Part shown: positions 4,100 through 60,128 of the stretch, piece after piece
How positions within the stretch are numbered: position 1 is the stretch's first letter
How the letters are laid out: each line of letters opens with the position of its first letter
Sequence record: OM718002.1
Strand: one strand, 5' to 3'
DNA length: 64,000 nucleotides
Notes under the pieces: generated by a model
What the model was told of the DNA's origin: nothing
The model's input: only the letters and a program-made list of their open reading frames with translations
Databases searched by the model: none
Position numbers and translations under genes: made by a program

Positions 4100-4170
4100 C
4101 TGTTTAAATAGGTTTGAATATAATTTTATTTATTATAATACTCATTAAAATAATACTTTCATATACACTA

Positions 4171-4174
4171 TATG
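4171..4174 (+). promoter_or_regulatory. Candidate late promoter TATG for the tRNA
   Basis: TATG 12 nt upstream of the tRNA; TATG is the phiKZ nvRNAP late motif but is only a 4-mer. Confidence 0.4.
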
Positions 4175-4185
4175 TAGAAGATTCC

Positions 4186-4262
4186 GCCGCTATAGCTCAG
4201 CTAGGTAGAGCAACGCACTTGTAATGCGTAGGTCCTCCGTTCGATTCGGAGTGGCGGCACCA
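4186..4262 (+). tRNA. trnT: tRNA-Thr(UGU)
   Basis: Full cloverleaf: GCCGCTA/TGGCGGC acceptor, GCTC/GAGC D-stem, ACGCA-CT-TGT-AA-TGCGT, CTCCG-TTCGATT-CGGAG, encoded CCA. Confidence 0.97.
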
Positions 4263-4340
4263 AATTTACTGAGGTTTAAACTATTCTTAAATATATTAGT
4301 TAGGATGGGATTGAACGCGAAAGACTCAGTAAATCATATT

Positions 4341-4360
4341 GCCCCTCCATATGGAGGGGC
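4341..4360 (+). terminator. Terminator after the tRNA (perfect 20-nt palindrome)
   Basis: gcccctccat/atggaggggc followed by TTATG. Confidence 0.75.
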
Positions 4361-4391
4361 TTATGTTTGTCATTAATCAGGAAAATATAAA

Positions 4392-57122: not shown

Positions 57123-57299
57123 TTAATTATTAAAAGATAAATCATAATCACTTTGTCTGCGATTCGGATTAACAGGATCAGGATATTTTCCAGTTTTGAT
57201 AACTTCTTTTATAGCTCTAAAATCACGTTCTAGAAAATCTAGTTTTTTAACTAACTCTTTTTCTAATTCTTTATTGAGTAGTCTTCTTAATTTGCTCAT
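57123..57299 (-). CDS. Small hypothetical protein (58 aa, not in ORF track)
   Basis: Manual translation MSKLRRLLNKELEKELVKKLDFLERDF...; fills the gap between neighbours. Confidence 0.5.
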   Translation of the reverse strand: MSKLRRLLNKELEKELVKKLDFLERDFRAIKEVIKTGKYPDPVNPNRRQSDYDLSFNN

Positions 57300-57666
57300 C
57301 TACGTATACTCTCACAATGAACCAATTGATTAGGCCAAAACCTTTTGGTGTGATGGTAATGTCATCTTTATATCCATTTTTAGTGATTACATTACGTAAT
57401 ACTTTAATTGCTTCAGGTGGAATAAGATTAGCATTACCGGTAACACTATACTCGAAATAATAACCTACACCTGGTAAATAACCTGATGCAATCTGGTTAG
57501 TACCTGTGATATTACTAACGTGTTGGAAGTCACTAAAAGCATTCTTGTAGAATAACAAAATATTAGGAATTACTTCATCCCTAATAGTAGAACTAGTAAT
57601 GGCATCCGCCGATGGAAAATAAGGTACTAATTCATCTGTTACATTGGTGCTATTAATATCGGACAT
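57271..57666 (-). CDS. Hypothetical protein, paralog of 56705 and 24051
   Basis: FPSADAI ... RNVITKNGYKDDI; first gene after promoter 57713. Confidence 0.7.
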   Translation of the reverse strand: MSDINSTNVTDELVPYFPSADAITSSTIRDEVIPNILLFYKNAFSDFQHVSNITGTNQIASGYLPGVGYYFEYSVTGNANLIPPEAIKVLRNVITKNGYKDDITITPKGFGLINWFIVRVYVDEQIKKTTQ

Positions 57667-57712
57667 AATCTTTTCCTCATTATAAAAGGATAAATATCTT
57701 TATGGTAATCCT

Positions 57713-57720
57713 GTAATATA
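57713..57720 (-). promoter_or_regulatory. Early promoter TATATTAC
   Basis: Exact octamer downstream of hairpin 57750. Confidence 0.85.
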
Positions 57721-57749
57721 GATTTAAATTAATTTATAATGAATGGCAT

Positions 57750-57774
57750 AAAGGAGCCCCTGGTGGGCTCCTTT
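57750..57774. terminator. Terminator-like hairpin
   Basis: aaaggagccc-ctggt-gggctccttt. Confidence 0.65.
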
Positions 57775-57813
57775 AATGTAATAGGTCCGACCCCTATCTA
57801 GAGGTCGGTGAGT

Positions 57814-57929
57814 AGCAAGGCACCGTAGTTGGGGTTCGTGTCGTTCCTGACGATACTTTAGTACCCCGGTTTATTTACGACTGGATCACCCCCTTAAAGT
57901 GCAGTGCGTTTTACGCAAACTGCCTTGCT
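57814..57929 (+). ncRNA. Candidate structured non-coding RNA (about 116 nt)
   Basis: 9-bp terminal repeat agcaaggca/tgccttgct enclosing several hairpins; GC-rich, non-coding; G-U pairs favour the plus strand. Confidence 0.5.
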
Positions 57930-57972
57930 CTATATCATTGCACTGTGCGTATTTTTATTCGTTAGCTAATCT

Positions 57973-57976
57973 TATG
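57973..57976 (+). promoter_or_regulatory. Candidate late promoter TATG for the helicase operon
   Basis: 44 nt upstream of ATG 58017. Confidence 0.35.
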
Positions 57977-58016
57977 ACTTAGAGTTATATTTACATACCC
58001 CTTAAGGAAAAATGCA

Positions 58017-60128
58017 ATGATAGACTCATTTAGGAAGCTAATGGGCTCGCTATCAATTACTGAAACTGATCAAGAAATTATCATCAGTGGTTTTGATGGT
58101 GCTGCATTCATTAGAGATATTAACAAGTATTGGCGAACCACTAAATTAGCTACGCAGTTATTTAACACGGTTAGTCGTCGTAGTATTTCATTTTATAAAT
58201 TCTTTGCTCCTGAAATATATTACATGCTAGAAGCAGTAAAGAATTATAGAAGTAGATACATCTCTATTAAAACTGTTAATGCCATCCGTGAAGCAATGCT
58301 TCAATATACCTGGTTAAAAAATACTCGTCCTGTAGATACCAACTCTGTACCAGGTAGACTCAATTTCAAGATGTTAGACAAATTGACATTTACACCAGAT
58401 GAGTCTCAAAAAGCTTATTTTGAAAATTATAATTATCGAATTGACCAGTATGGTTTACGTGGTGATATTGTTGCAGGTAAACCTGGTACTGGTAAGACAT
58501 TCATGACGATGGCTATTGCTGAAATGGTTGAGTCGGATATCATTATAGTTGTTTGTGAAAAGAAGTCTATTGATCTAATATGGAAGCCATCTATTATTGA
58601 GATGTATAAGGAAAGACAAAAAGTATGGTCGACCATTGATGATAAAGCCTACAACGGTCAAAGAATACTTATATCCCATTACCAGGCGCAAGATAAAATA
58701 ATTGATCTATTAAGAAGCGGTATATTCAAAGGTAAGAACATTACGGTGATTCTGGATGAATCACACAATATGAACGATCCTAATTCTGCACAATCTCTTA
58801 AGTTCCAGCAAATATGTTTTATGTCTAACTCTAATAACAGATTATTAGCGTCAGGTACCCCTGTTAAAGCACTTGGTTCTGAATTAGTAAGTGCATTAAG
58901 AGTATTAGACGATCTCTTCACCAATGAGGTTGAAGAACGTTTTAAGAAAGCATTTGGAAAAGAGACACAGAAAGGATTAGATATTGTCCAACATCGCTTT
59001 GGGTTAATTGCGTACGTCATTGAAAAGAAAGATACTGAGGTTTTACCACCGAGGATAAAAGCGTATCGTATCAAGATACCAAATGGATCACAGTATACTC
59101 TTAATGCCATTAAACGTGATTGTGAAGCTTTTATTAGAGAACGTGTAAAGTTCTATGCTGCGCGCCGACCAGAAGATGAGAAGTATTGGGCTAAACTAAT
59201 GGCGATACACGAGAACTCTCTTAAGACCCAGGCGCAGAAAGATGGTTTCGCTCGCTATAAGAATTTGATTAAAATAATTCAGAAGAATCAAGACCCGCGA
59301 TACATTGGTGAAGAAATTAAAGAATCTAACCAATATGAAAAAATGTTTATAGAGCCAACTTTACCTCGTAATGAAATAGCTGCTTTTAGAGATATTAAAT
59401 CAGTTATAAAATACGTTATGCTAAAGATACAAGGTGAATGTTTGGGAAGGGTTTTAGGTGCTAAACGCATTCAGTGCCATGTGGACATGGTACCGTATAT
59501 TGACTGGGTTGGTATCACTGAATCAACTATGAAGAAAACGATTGCATTTACATCGTTTGTTGAGGTTGTTGATACTGTTGATAAGTACACCAATAAATTA
59601 GGTATGCATCCGGCGGTGGTGTATGGTAAAACCAATGACAATTTACCTCAAATAATCAGTAGATTTGAGAAAGACCCTAAATTAAATCCATTGGTAGCTA
59701 CATATGCTTCCCTTTCAACAGCGGTCCGTATGACGATGGCTGATACTATGGTGACAATTAATTCACCGTTTAGGCATTACATTCTAGAACAAGCTATTGC
59801 TCGAATTTACCGTAAAGGTCAGGATTCACAAACAGTCGTATATCAATGTACTCTCGATACAGAAGATGAACCGAATATCTCAACAAGGTCAGATGACATT
59901 CTAAAATGGAGTCAGGCAATGGTTGAAGCTATTATGGGTATTAAATCTCCATTTGAGATCACAGAGTCATTAGAAAGTTATGTTGATAAAAATAATAATT
60001 TTGATGAAAATAAAATCATTTATCAGATGCTAAAAGAATCATTTGAGAAGTATGATATCGCAATTGATTTTAATGACTTTGATACACGTATGTATAAACC
60101 ATATCAGCCCGCATATATGCGGTTTTAA
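58017..60128 (+). CDS. SF2 SNF2-like helicase/ATPase
   Basis: GKPGTGKT, ILDESH, LASGTP, EQAIARIYRKGQ. Confidence 0.88.
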   Translation: MIDSFRKLMGSLSITETDQEIIISGFDGAAFIRDINKYWRTTKLATQLFNTVSRRSISFYKFFAPEIYYMLEAVKNYRSRYISIKTVNAIREAMLQYTWLKNTRPVDTNSVPGRLNFKMLDKLTFTPDESQKAYFENYNYRIDQYGLRGDIVAGKPGTGKTFMTMAIAEMVESDIIIVVCEKKSIDLIWKPSIIEMYKERQKVWSTIDDKAYNGQRILISHYQAQDKIIDLLRSGIFKGKNITVILDESHNMNDPNSAQSLKFQQICFMSNSNNRLLASGTPVKALGSELVSALRVLDDLFTNEVEERFKKAFGKETQKGLDIVQHRFGLIAYVIEKKDTEVLPPRIKAYRIKIPNGSQYTLNAIKRDCEAFIRERVKFYAARRPEDEKYWAKLMAIHENSLKTQAQKDGFARYKNLIKIIQKNQDPRYIGEEIKESNQYEKMFIEPTLPRNEIAAFRDIKSVIKYVMLKIQGECLGRVLGAKRIQCHVDMVPYIDWVGITESTMKKTIAFTSFVEVVDTVDKYTNKLGMHPAVVYGKTNDNLPQIISRFEKDPKLNPLVATYASLSTAVRMTMADTMVTINSPFRHYILEQAIARIYRKGQDSQTVVYQCTLDTEDEPNISTRSDDILKWSQAMVEAIMGIKSPFEITESLESYVDKNNNFDENKIIYQMLKESFEKYDIAIDFNDFDTRMYKPYQPAYMRF

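Follow-up and report, generated by a model that had tools for sequence, protein, structure and literature searches.

Shine-Dalgarno (SD)-like sequences that bind the 30S subunit without initiation stabilize RNA in Firmicutes, as displayed by the STAB-SD of the Bacillus thuringiensis cryIIIA leader and the polypurine stabilizer of the Bacillus phage SP82. These elements span about 9 nt and act in cis from the 5' UTR of an mRNA, in Firmicutes possessing a 5' exonuclease. The anti-SD region of the ribosome can also be occupied by host proteins, namely RMF in hibernating ribosomes and the bS21-type sequestration of Bacteroidia. In other domains of life, U3 snoRNA-type RNAs pair with pre-rRNA, and archaeal and yeast ribosome-associated ncRNAs bind small-subunit rRNA or the subunit itself, not mRNA. 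In phiKZ, a phage-therapy relative that serves as the model of nucleus-forming jumbo phages, the factors so far known, to our knowledge, to bias host ribosomes are all proteins, PHIKZ014 being an example. Grad-seq and ONT-cappable-seq yielded several ncRNA candidates in phiKZ and its relative 201phi2-1 (3'UTR_PHIKZ298, the p40 5'UTR, RNAs upstream of PHIKZ221, PHIKZ302 and gp182, and sRNA005 of 201phi2-1).

The window analyzed here, a 64,000-nt stretch of record OM718002.1, belongs to phage phiKZ. A gap without CDS separated PHIKZ204 (minus strand) from the helicase gene PHIKZ203 (plus strand) at positions 57667-58016, in agreement with the gap of about 350 nt between divergent units noted in a preliminary description of this DNA. 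GC content rose sharply inside the gap, reaching 0.51-0.55 over 57750-57900 compared with about 0.31-0.36 in the flanks, again in agreement with that description. The stems listed there were all located, i.e., agcaaggca (57814-57822) with tgccttgct (57921-57929), ttggggt/accccgg, gtgtcgt/acgatac, gcagt..actgc and the separate hairpin ccgacc/ggtcgg (57787-57808), and the helices were backed by covariation across 17 sequences.

These features very probably belong to a real and independent ncRNA gene of about 184 nt, predicted on the minus strand from 57930 down to 57747 (approximately 212854-213037 on the plus strand of NC_004629, which is the minus strand of the window). A covariance model (R1) scored 127 bits at the phiKZ locus and 103 to 152 bits in 16 homologues. 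The length of about 116 nt initially proposed was too short, the predicted unit also comprising hairpin B and a terminator hairpin. The latter (57753-57771) falls just outside the start of the region first described, the true unit being larger.

No known RNA family was recognized at the locus, as previously stated. The whole window searched against Rfam 15 at the gathering threshold returned tRNA-Thr (4186-4259) as its sole match, and the search of region 57600-58100 at E<=10 returned five chance-level matches, none of them over 57781-57935. ARAGORN detected one tRNA in the window (4186-4262) and no tRNA or tmRNA at the ncRNA locus. Among the decoy functions first suggested (RNA polymerase, ribosome or protein), a 6S-like polymerase decoy was rejected, with no 6S match in Rfam and a supported fold consisting of a branched junction with two 3' hairpins, not a rod; the ribosome part of the suggestion agrees, at sequence level, with the 16S complement described below. 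Open reading frames crossing the ncRNA were chance occurrences of 20-27 aa that all lay on the opposite strand, none being conserved. On the minus strand, no ORF of at least 20 aa was found within the ncRNA, and none between the SD-like stretch and the terminator in 17/17 members. The claim of a discrete, structured and non-coding phage RNA was supported by covariation and by the lack of a conserved ORF. Several GenBank records carry small hypothetical CDSs that overlie the RNA gene, an annotation which is corrected here. The RNA was not described in the main texts of the phiKZ and 201phi2-1 transcriptome papers or in a 2025 review, and no locus that the ncRNA papers on these phages name in their main texts corresponds to it, although supplementary tables may list it. 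Supplements of the Grad-seq paper, which sampled 10 min after infection, contain neither the name of a neighboring gene nor the ncRNA coordinates.

The fold was above chance on comparative evidence and not on single-sequence folding, which was unconvincing against dinucleotide shuffles (z = -1.9 on the plus strand and -2.8 on the minus strand). The alignment gathered 17 sequences of nucleus-forming jumbo phages of Pseudomonas, representing six genera or more, with slid partners and shuffles as controls. Paired cells accounted for 92.2% of the total, against 34-42% with slid partners. Covariation across phiKZ-like phages, which the preliminary description had named as a check on its candidate, displayed compensatory changes on both sides at 19 of the 31 pairs. 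Compensatory cells numbered 95, for 5-20 with slid partners and 30 in shuffles, and 0/500 shuffles reached the observed value.

Comparison supports a three-way junction (P1, P2 and P3) with an optional hairpin B and the terminator hairpin, all read on the minus strand. The 5' strand of P1, AGCAAGGCA (57921-57929), begins one nucleotide past the predicted 5' end and pairs with UGCCUUGCU (57814-57822); 95% of P1 cells were paired, with double changes at two pairs, and one pair was G.U in six sequences, where the plus strand would show C.A. P2 (57901-57923, GCAG..UGCG-loop-CGCA..CUGC) was paired in 89% of cells, and its distal stem and base co-varied between clades (GCAG/CUGC, GGUC/GACC, GAUA/UAUC). 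Because the base of P2 overlaps the inner end of P1, two P1/P2 registers are possible, which accords with the alternative folds anticipated earlier; no alternative pairing engaged the terminator hairpin. P3 (57831-57867) is a long hairpin with an internal loop, formed by an outer GGGGU/ACCCC and an inner GUAUCGU/ACGACAC helix, with double changes at 4/5 (helix 3) and 5/5 (helix 4) pairs. Its apical loop was a GNRA tetraloop in nearly all homologues (GGGA, GAGA, GUGA, GCGA), and residues of the internal loop were conserved. Hairpin B (CCGACCUCU/AGGGGUCGG, 57787-57808) is a stable hairpin whose sequence differs in each phage; it was found in the phiKZ, PhiPA3, Pawinskivirus, 201phi2-1 and Phabio clades and was reduced or absent in the Psa21 clade. 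An additional helix or pseudoknot, joining (G)YCG after the 16S-complementary stretch to CGR(Y) before the P1 3' strand in a helix-45-like closure, fitted phiKZ, Pawinskivirus, Psa21 and L280, but was dropped because it failed in the 201phi2-1 clade, L240 and Phabio.

In the predicted fold, conservation peaked in a single-stranded segment. The junction between P2 and P3 (J2/3, 57878-57896) harbors UUAAGGGGGUGAUCCAGUCG, a complement of the 3' end of 16S rRNA, and within it the 12-mer GG(G/A)GGUGAUCCA (57882-57893) held 12 of the 29 invariant columns, remaining unvarying in the 17 sequences while the helices varied freely. The stretch is a perfect 13-nt complement of the free 16S 3' tail (anti-SD), GAUCACCUCCUUA, with one G.U in most members. 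Complementarity extends to 17-19 nt, reaching the base of helix 45, where the final 4-6 complementary nucleotides are paired in the mature 30S. The two variable positions of the stretch toggled between A and G only, each opposite a U of the 16S tail. The 16S reference was a 51-mer found exactly in many Pseudomonas genomes, which is the exact 3' end of the SSU rRNA. An 18-mer complement of this end matched the window once, for 0.01 matches expected. Computed binding to the 13-nt tail (-21 kcal/mol) was the strongest in the 64 kb on both strands, the next best site reaching -15.1 kcal/mol, and the SD regions of 90 ORFs in the window averaged -5.6 kcal/mol (minimum -12.6). No covariation-supported partner for this stretch was found inside the RNA in the 17-sequence alignment. 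In single-sequence predictions, the accessibility of the 13-mer was unremarkable, with an opening cost of 3.6-7.3 kcal/mol and an unpaired probability about average. No AUG, GUG or UUG was conserved 4-12 nt from the SD core, and an in-frame GUG within the motif opened only 4-10 codons of unconserved sequence. This invariant single-stranded complement had been overlooked in the preliminary description.

The gene appeared to be bounded by its own promoter and its own intrinsic terminator, as expected of an independent sRNA gene. In middle promoters of phiKZ, an A-rich repeat comes first and is followed by TACT, which lies about 22 nt before the transcription start site (TSS) (Wicke 2021); an AT-rich motif centered on -24 has also been described for them (Sokolova 2020). 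The putative ncRNA promoter (57931-57960, minus strand) displayed an A-rich tract at about -29 to -25, TAC at -21 to -19 (57951-57949) and TATA at -4 to -1, counted from the G at 57930, and the consensus aAAaa..atAC(10 nt)AT..TATA|G was present upstream of 17/17 homologues. The A-rich tract and TAC(T/G) stand at a distance from TATA|G that suits middle promoters, the start site itself being predicted; phiKZ reads TACG rather than TACT. The same A-rich/TAC/TATA architecture was found upstream of tRNA-Thr in the window. Late promoters of phiKZ have the form T(-3)ATG(+1), overlapping the TSS (Sokolova 2020); a late promoter was rejected for the ncRNA, which displays TATAG and not TATG at that place, while the divergent helicase gene has a late-type TATG at 57973-57976. 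The phage non-virion RNA polymerase probably transcribes the ncRNA from this putative middle-type promoter.

At the other end, the predicted terminator (57747-57771, minus strand) is a GGAGCCC/GGGCUCC hairpin (57753-57771) followed by UUUAUG. Terminators of phiKZ have been described as a GC-rich stem-loop followed by YTTATKYYGT (TTAT-K-YY-GT) (Putzeys 2024). In agreement with this motif, the phiKZ hairpin is followed by TTTATGCCAT, and those of relatives by GGGCTTTATGTCGT or GGCTTTATGCCGT. The tail motif was enriched in the window (11 occurrences for 1.8 expected). Double changes occurred at 7/8 pairs of the terminator hairpin, and its loop read UUCG, UGCG or UACG on the minus strand in 9/17 sequences.

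The RNA was assigned to the minus strand because of its GNRA and UNCG tetraloops, its excess of G.U pairs, the phiKZ-type terminator and the conserved, probably middle-type promoter, which reverses the plus strand implied by the G-U argument of the preliminary description. Read on the minus strand, the 17-sequence alignment contained 36 G.U for 15 A.C cells, and in hairpin B the pairs that would be A.C on the plus strand are G.U on the minus strand in PS119XW, 201phi2-1 and Phabio. Minimum free energy (MFE) of the whole RNA was ambiguous as a strand test, being lower on the minus strand in only 10/17 sequences. A functional plus strand would mimic the 16S 3' end, with GGCUGGAUCACCCCCUUAA after a helix-45-like hairpin, and act as a protein or nuclease decoy or as an anti-SD decoy titrating SD-containing mRNAs. 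It would account for the likeness to 16S AAGUCGU..CAAGG..CCGUAG..CGGCUGGAUCACCUCCUUA over about 40 positions, turn the 15 A.C cells into G.U and fit the lower plus-strand MFE of the Psa21 clade. Such a mimic is very unlikely and was rejected on loop types, pair counts and the polarity of the promoter and terminator. Plus-strand loops would read UCCC/UCUC and CGAA/CGCA instead of GNRA and UNCG, and G.U cells favored the minus strand. The conserved promoter and the hairpin with UUUAUG are readable on the minus strand only. No phiKZ promoter motif was found upstream of the element on the plus strand, and a plus-strand RNA would be antisense to all neighboring genes in four phages.

The whole RNA block was conserved in Phikzvirus, Miltoncavirus, Pawinskivirus, Serwervirus, Phabiovirus, Tepukevirus and uncultivated relatives, yet the proteins of these phages were only 51-58% identical. 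The element was not found within 8-20 kb on either side of the helicase gene in EL, OBP, RP12, RTH11 and Goslar, as searched with R1 and a mismatch-tolerant motif, and it is therefore not universal among nucleus-forming phages. Its genomic surroundings were not fixed. In phiKZ the gene downstream was PHIKZ204; PhiPA3 had the helicase at this place, 201phi2-1 had gp305 and PS119XW a convergent CDS, and neighbors and orientations also differed in Phabio. Since neighbors and orientations vary between phages, the element appears to be an independent gene and not a helicase leader; the switchable leader of the helicase operon proposed initially is further contradicted in phiKZ, where transcription of the RNA would lead away from that gene.

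A cis-acting leader or attenuator of whichever gene lies downstream, or a tiny peptide started from the strong SD, is likewise highly improbable. A terminator lying shortly after a TSS is the ONT-cappable-seq signature of the "5'UTR-derived" phiKZ RNAs (Putzeys 2024), and a same-strand gene follows the element in phiKZ and Psa21. In phiKZ and Psa21, though, that gene has an early-type promoter of its own (TCTATATTAC) between the terminator and its start; several contigs likewise carry an early-type promoter ahead of the gene that follows, and other phages have a different or a convergent neighbor. A 5' leader or riboswitch-attenuator was rejected on these two grounds, the unfixed downstream gene and the intervening promoter. 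As for a peptide, it is contradicted by the lack of a conserved start 4-12 nt from the SD core and of a minus-strand ORF of at least 20 aa.

Given that the best-conserved stretch exactly complements the ribosomal tail on which mRNA docks, the phage RNA probably binds host ribosomes directly. Action of the ncRNA through pairing with the 16S 3' tail is favored, at somewhat above even odds. The best explanation overall, with a probability of roughly 0.55, is that of a trans-acting RNA docking on the 30S as a super-SD devoid of start codon. The independent minus-strand gene would produce a structured RNA of about 184 nt ending at the phiKZ-type intrinsic terminator, which would be made inside the phage nucleus and would then need to be exported, a point against the model. 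The RNA would dock on the 30S, or on the 70S platform, via an unusually long SD/anti-SD helix, and the adjacent P2 and P3 would keep it out of the mRNA channel, so that the anti-SD would be occupied with no translation. Ribosomes may then be held in a standby or sequestered state, biasing initiation; the 16S tail may be shielded from factors or nucleases that bind there; or P3 and hairpin B may tether ribosomes to a phage RNP. Because phiKZ genes themselves use SD sequences, a simple ribosome sponge would hurt the phage too.

The SD-like stretch could instead act only in cis, as a 30S-bound stabilizer or standby site against decay, the function proper (protein sponge or scaffold) residing in P3 and hairpin B. 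The STAB-SD and SP82 elements provide precedents in Firmicutes and a Bacillus phage, and P3 retains its GNRA loop and conserved internal-loop residues. Numerous intergenic, non-RBS copies of the 15-mer complement in unrelated phages would also suit a stabilizer. This reading is nonetheless rather unlikely. No part of the RNA is better conserved than the 12-mer, and a complementarity of 13-19 nt far exceeds what a stabilizer needs. Rather than being 5'-terminal, the stretch is preceded by two helices and begins about 35 nt into the RNA. It is not located in the 5' UTR of a stabilized mRNA, with no ORF following it in 17/17 members. Moreover, we know of no RNase J-type 5' exonuclease in Pseudomonas.

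Docking on the free tail was also weighed against a two-block antisense to the whole 16S 3' minor domain, pairing with nascent or unfolded 16S at nt ~1492-1514 and 1523-1542. The effect would be to block or redirect 30S maturation, or to make a long duplex for a double-strand RNase. Downstream of P3, CUACGG(UG)CCUUG(ACGACU) complements 16S AGUCGUAACAAGGUAGCCGUAG, and the duplex with the last 51 nt of 16S reached -48 to -65 kcal/mol, compared with -35.8 +/- 3.9 in shuffles. The second block alone stood out in phiKZ, PhiPA3, PS119XW, HPP-Temi, L241 and L280 (z = -2.5 to -4.9), but in the 201phi2-1, Phabio and Psa21 clades it was weak or lacking (z = -0.4 to -2.3), and this dependence on the clade led to its demotion to a rival. 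The CCUUG within it serves as the P1 3' strand and is accounted for by the fold of the RNA itself, invariance is limited to the tail complement, and no clear gain appears for a ribosome-dependent phage. A two-block antisense is unlikely. A broader reading, in which a virus RNA would seize host ribosomes by rRNA pairing and some members might pair with both sides of helix 45, is tentative and slightly below even odds.

Compared with described systems, the phiKZ RNA shares with STAB-SD and SP82 an SD-like 16S complement without a conserved start codon downstream, thought in those systems to bind the 30S untranslated, and SP82 is likewise phage-encoded. It differs from them by a stretch of 13-19 nt, a three-way junction, the lack of an ORF, a Gram-negative host and the fact that the stretch is the invariant core of the family. 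With trans-acting sRNAs and RNA sponges it has in common a predicted promoter and terminator of its own, a length of 160-190 nt, and co-varying helices on either side of a conserved single-stranded seed, which at sequence level is the 12-mer facing the 16S tail; however, its best target is the 16S 3' tail and not an mRNA or sRNA, and its seed is much longer. The ncRNA candidates of phiKZ and 201phi2-1 come from the same phages and are also short structured transcripts with TSS and terminator (one of them, sRNA005/gp182, being conserved between genera), but they have been described as deriving from UTRs and as linked to a conserved gene downstream, and rRNA complementarity is unreported for them. 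The proposed outcome, a 16S 3' tail unavailable for SD pairing, is that of RMF and bS21, which are host-encoded proteins, whereas here a virus-encoded RNA would act by Watson-Crick pairing. Two-block complementarity flanking a helix recalls U3, though with no homology, no snoRNP proteins, another domain of life and a second block not found in all members.

With an invariant core that is the exact anti-SD complement, the question of how phiKZ biases ribosomes becomes directly testable. If the proposed docking is true, this would be the first description of a trans-acting RNA that pairs with rRNA in a bacterial virus, and rRNA would join the targets of regulatory RNAs in bacteria. Such an RNA would be a counterpart of hibernation and anti-SD-masking factors, and a compact natural tool to occupy or tether 30S subunits.

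The metagenome scan returned mostly antisense 16S genes, which were filtered out, and the IMG/VR scan with a looser first pattern gave mostly chance matches. Among viral contigs, the perfect 15-mer complement was found in many non-RBS intergenic copies in unrelated phages, some of whose contigs carry intergenic elements of the form TAAGGAGGTGATCCA + ATCT, a hint that 30S-docking non-coding elements are perhaps widespread.

The 350-nt gap between PHIKZ204 (57271-57666, minus strand) and PHIKZ203, a virion-associated DEAD/SNF2 helicase (58017-60128, plus strand), matched Pseudomonas phage phiKZ and about 40 sibling isolates at 100% identity, none of whose records carried an annotated feature in it. 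The gap encompassed a GC-rich block (0.51-0.55; flanks about 0.31-0.36), in which we place a candidate structured RNA gene of 184 nt on the minus strand, from about 57930 to about 57747 (about 212854-213037 on the plus strand of NC_004629). No Rfam family was found for the RNA on either strand, no tRNA or tmRNA at its locus, and no minus-strand ORF reaching 20 aa within the gene. GenBank 'hypothetical protein' CDSs overlapped the RNA gene, on either strand, in HPP-Temi (locus L006, 2358-2447 and 2545-2640) and Viktualia (locus L007, 2460-2549); these small CDSs are almost certainly spurious calls.

Sensitive blastn gave partial matches in phages of other genera (PS119XW, PhiPA3, Phabio, 201phi2-1 and Viktualia), each within an intergenic gap close to a gp203-like helicase. 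When the gaps were aligned, the conserved block spanned the whole ~180 nt, with helicases just 51-58% identical. Enlarged by pattern scans of IMG/VR and metagenomes, and by Psa21, the set held 17 distinct homologues of 157-185 nt (pairwise identity 58-95%); phages D6 and RVTF4 are further GenBank members outside this set. R1, a covariance model made from family members, scored 103-152 bits across every member and matched nothing in the 64-kb window besides the RNA gene. No R1 match was found within 8-20 kb of the helicase in EL, OBP, RP12, RTH11 and Goslar, in agreement with a mismatch-tolerant motif search of these helicase surroundings, which also returned none. The distribution is given exclusive of the Noxifer helicase region, the 5-kb Noxifer locus searched (L008) having come from a spurious short match. 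As far as sampled, the RNA marks the clade of Pseudomonas nucleus-forming phages with a helicase at least 51% identical to that of phiKZ. One 125-kb contig carrying a full copy also displayed a weak second R1 match (L240:1579-1650, plus strand; 25 bits, E about 5e-4), probably a merely similar terminator hairpin. The gp203-like helicase itself, called 'DarB-like antirestriction' in some records, matched in two pieces in SL2 (MF805716, 74235-77165), PhiPA3 (216447-219608), PA1C and PS119XW; these matches stretched over about 0.8-1.05 kb of DNA beyond what a protein the size of the phiKZ helicase (703 aa) requires, which indicates that these phages have an inserted intron, intein or extra domain.

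The helices that the preliminary description had read from the sequence alone, for a structured RNA at 57781-57950, were all present where it had placed them. The single-sequence fold gained only marginally over shuffles (z = -1.9 on the plus strand, -2.8 on the minus strand), so that one sequence alone proves nothing. Covariance across relatives supported the helices: in the R1-guided alignment (A5), standard pairs filled 92.2% of 513 cells, against 74% after column shuffling and 34-42% with the 3' partners slid by 1-3 columns, and 19 of the 31 pairs displayed two-sided changes. Compensatory cells numbered 95 (5-20 in slid and 30 in shuffled controls), and none of 500 shuffles attained the observed covariation values. 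A5 was fitted to the model and is therefore biased towards the structure; the slid controls and a plain MAFFT/RNAalifold result concurred with it. Covariation-supported helices on the minus strand were P1 (the 9-bp closing helix), P2, the outer and inner stems of P3, and the terminator hairpin (57753-57771). Hairpin B (57787-57808, minus strand) was stable and differed from phage to phage among those having one, and was nearly missing from the Psa21 clade.

G-U pairs had been taken to favour the plus strand, whereas the family evidence favoured the minus strand. Cells pairing on the minus strand only (G.U) numbered 36, against 15 pairing on the plus strand only (A.C). On the minus strand, the apical loops of P3 were GGGA, GAGA, GUGA and GCGA, and in 9 of 17 homologues a UUCG, UGCG or UACG terminator loop was closed by a C-G pair; read on the plus strand, the same loops were UCCC or CGAA-type. 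Directly 3' of the minus-strand 3' hairpin stood UUUAUG(Y)(Y)(G/A)U, a match to the published ONT-cappable-seq terminator motif of phiKZ, whose tail was enriched in the window (11 against 1.8 expected). A putative promoter consensus upstream, found in 17 of 17 homologues (A-rich tract, TAC at -21..-19, AT..TATA|G) agreed with descriptions of phiKZ middle promoters. Whole-RNA minimum free energy was non-discriminating, being lower on the minus strand in just 10 of 17. Pairing counts, loops, terminator and promoter consensus together argue for a minus-strand RNA. The promoter architecture also resembled the sequence ahead of tRNA-Thr in the window (4186-4262, plus strand), where AAAATAATACT..TATATG displayed the same A-rich/TAC/TAT arrangement. 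On the 3' side of this tRNA, about 80 unannotated nt preceded a hairpin and a CTTATGTT terminator motif at 4343-4367 (whole region 4135-4367, plus strand), and this spacer might contain an RNA released by processing or the remnant of a tRNA.

In the comparison of neighbouring genes (INDEPENDENCE), RNA transcription headed away from the helicase in phiKZ and Psa21, towards PHIKZ204 and PSA21_272, which possess their own early-type promoter, TCTATATTAC, beyond the RNA terminator. This early-promoter-like sequence lay at 57713-57722 (minus strand), between the terminator and the PHIKZ204 start, and was also found 3' of the terminator in Psa21, L240, L242, L245, L246, L249 and L280, and with one change in L241 (these L-numbers denoting homologue loci). 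In PhiPA3 the RNA and the helicase shared a strand, with the RNA upstream; other small genes flanked the RNA in 201phi2-1, Phabio and Viktualia, and in PS119XW its downstream neighbour was convergent. The phiKZ helicase had its own late-type motif back to back with the RNA promoter (GCTAATCTTATGAC, 57964-57978, plus strand, core TATG at 57973-57976), 41 nt upstream of its start. Psa21, L240, L242, L246 and L249 conserve the reverse complement, GTCATAAGATTAGC, upstream of their RNA promoter, so the two promoters stand back to back in those phages too; the copy in L017 was more diverged. Given such varying neighbours and orientations and the separate promoters, the RNA is neither a leader of the helicase operon, as had been suggested earlier, nor the leader of any fixed gene.

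The P2/P3 junction was unpaired in the consensus, without a co-varying partner, and its phiKZ sequence, UUAAGGGGGUGAUCCAGUCG, was the complement of the 16S rRNA 3' end. The 51-nt Pseudomonas 16S terminus used was exact in many Pseudomonas genomes and formed the last 51 nt of the P. putida Rfam SSU match. The 18-mer complement of the 16S end occurred once in the window (0.01 expected). Pairing with the free 13-nt tail (GAUCACCUCCUUA) was predicted at -20.8 to -22.2 kcal/mol in 17 of 17 members, and the phiKZ junction was the strongest 16S-tail site of the window on both strands (runner-up -15.1 kcal/mol); SD regions of 90 ORFs averaged -5.6, the best reaching -12.6 kcal/mol. The block GG(G/A)GGUGAUCCA accounted for 12 of the 29 invariant columns of the family, with the helices around it varying freely. 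The two positions of this complementary stretch that varied were A or G only, each opposite a U of the tail, so that pairing is retained either way. Complementarity extended 4-6 nt into the helix 45 3' strand (AGYC(G)), and no conserved start codon was found downstream of the stretch in the family. Were the RNA a simple ribosome sponge, the SDs used by phiKZ genes themselves and the predicted cost of opening the stretch (3.6-7.3 kcal/mol) would both count against it.

In phiKZ, PhiPA3, Pawinskivirus and two contigs, complementarity to 16S 1492-1514 was also seen in a segment 3' of P3, and a rival, less likely mechanism would have the RNA pair with this region besides the tail; in the 201phi2-1, Phabio and Psa21 clades this second block was not significant. 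It consisted of CUACGG and the P1 3' strand, plus ACGACU in Pawinskivirus, and in members having it the RNA resembled the last 50 nt of 16S copied in antisense, P3 replacing the helix-45 loop. We regard the block as either a vestige of origin or an extension confined to some clades.

At the level of sequence, comparison established a conserved, structured and independently bounded minus-strand unit, carrying an invariant, unpaired and ORF-less stretch that is a perfect complement of the anti-SD tail. The RNA would be transcribed during the middle phase, exit the phage nucleus and dock on the 30S or 70S through an extended SD/anti-SD helix, with P2 and P3 blocking accommodation in the mRNA channel. 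Such docking could sequester ribosomes or hold them on standby, mask the 16S tail from factors or nucleases, or tether ribosomes to phage RNP. STAB-SD-type 30S-binding stabilisers, ordinary base-pairing sRNAs and anti-SD-masking protein factors have a principle in common with the RNA, but it is a member of none of these groups. Neither the locus nor an rRNA-complementary phage RNA appeared in the main texts of the phiKZ dRNA-seq, Grad-seq, ONT-cappable-seq and ribosome-targeting papers and of the 201phi2-1 transcriptome paper, or in a 2025 review of nucleus-forming phages, and a full-text literature search for phiKZ or phage-encoded RNA with anti-Shine-Dalgarno gave nothing relevant. The RNA may be an unnamed supplementary-table entry (17 phiKZ candidates; three intergenic 201phi2-1 sRNAs). 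A new ncRNA family is well supported, and 16S-tail docking, its most likely though putative mode of action, would be unprecedented. The structured RNA of the preliminary description was thus confirmed as an observation, and its interpretation was partly right, failing on strand and operon leader.

A scan of IMG/VR for a perfect 15-mer 16S-tail complement (TAAGGAGGTGATCCA) gave at least 120 loci (L371-L490); no rRNA genes were found among the matches listed, of which about a third were very long SDs of real genes. Dozens of those listed were intergenic non-RBS copies on unrelated phage contigs, starting at the TAA codon that ends the preceding gene (e.g., L396:2877, L410:7292, L413:1833 minus, L430:4251, L385:780 minus). 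These copies had ATCT(C/A) 0-4 nt on, often with a hairpin after it (in some cases bearing a T-run), while the RBS of the next gene came 50-80 nt later; Rfam gave no match for the elements tested. ATCT occurred within 10 nt in about 40% of the matches listed, against about 3% by chance as a rough, uncomputed estimate. The intergenic copies may represent a widespread 30S-docking or STAB-SD-like element. Metagenome contigs of JAAUYG01 displayed a recurring element in which a 16S-tail inverted repeat (TATAGGATCACCTCCTGAGG...CCGAGGAGGTGATCCAACTTCTCC) precedes a further long inverted repeat (L255, L269, L270, L274, L275, L286, L299, L306, L307, L309, L310, L318, L332, L349 and L358); the element has the look of a repeat family dispersed within a single sample and bears no relation to the phage RNA.
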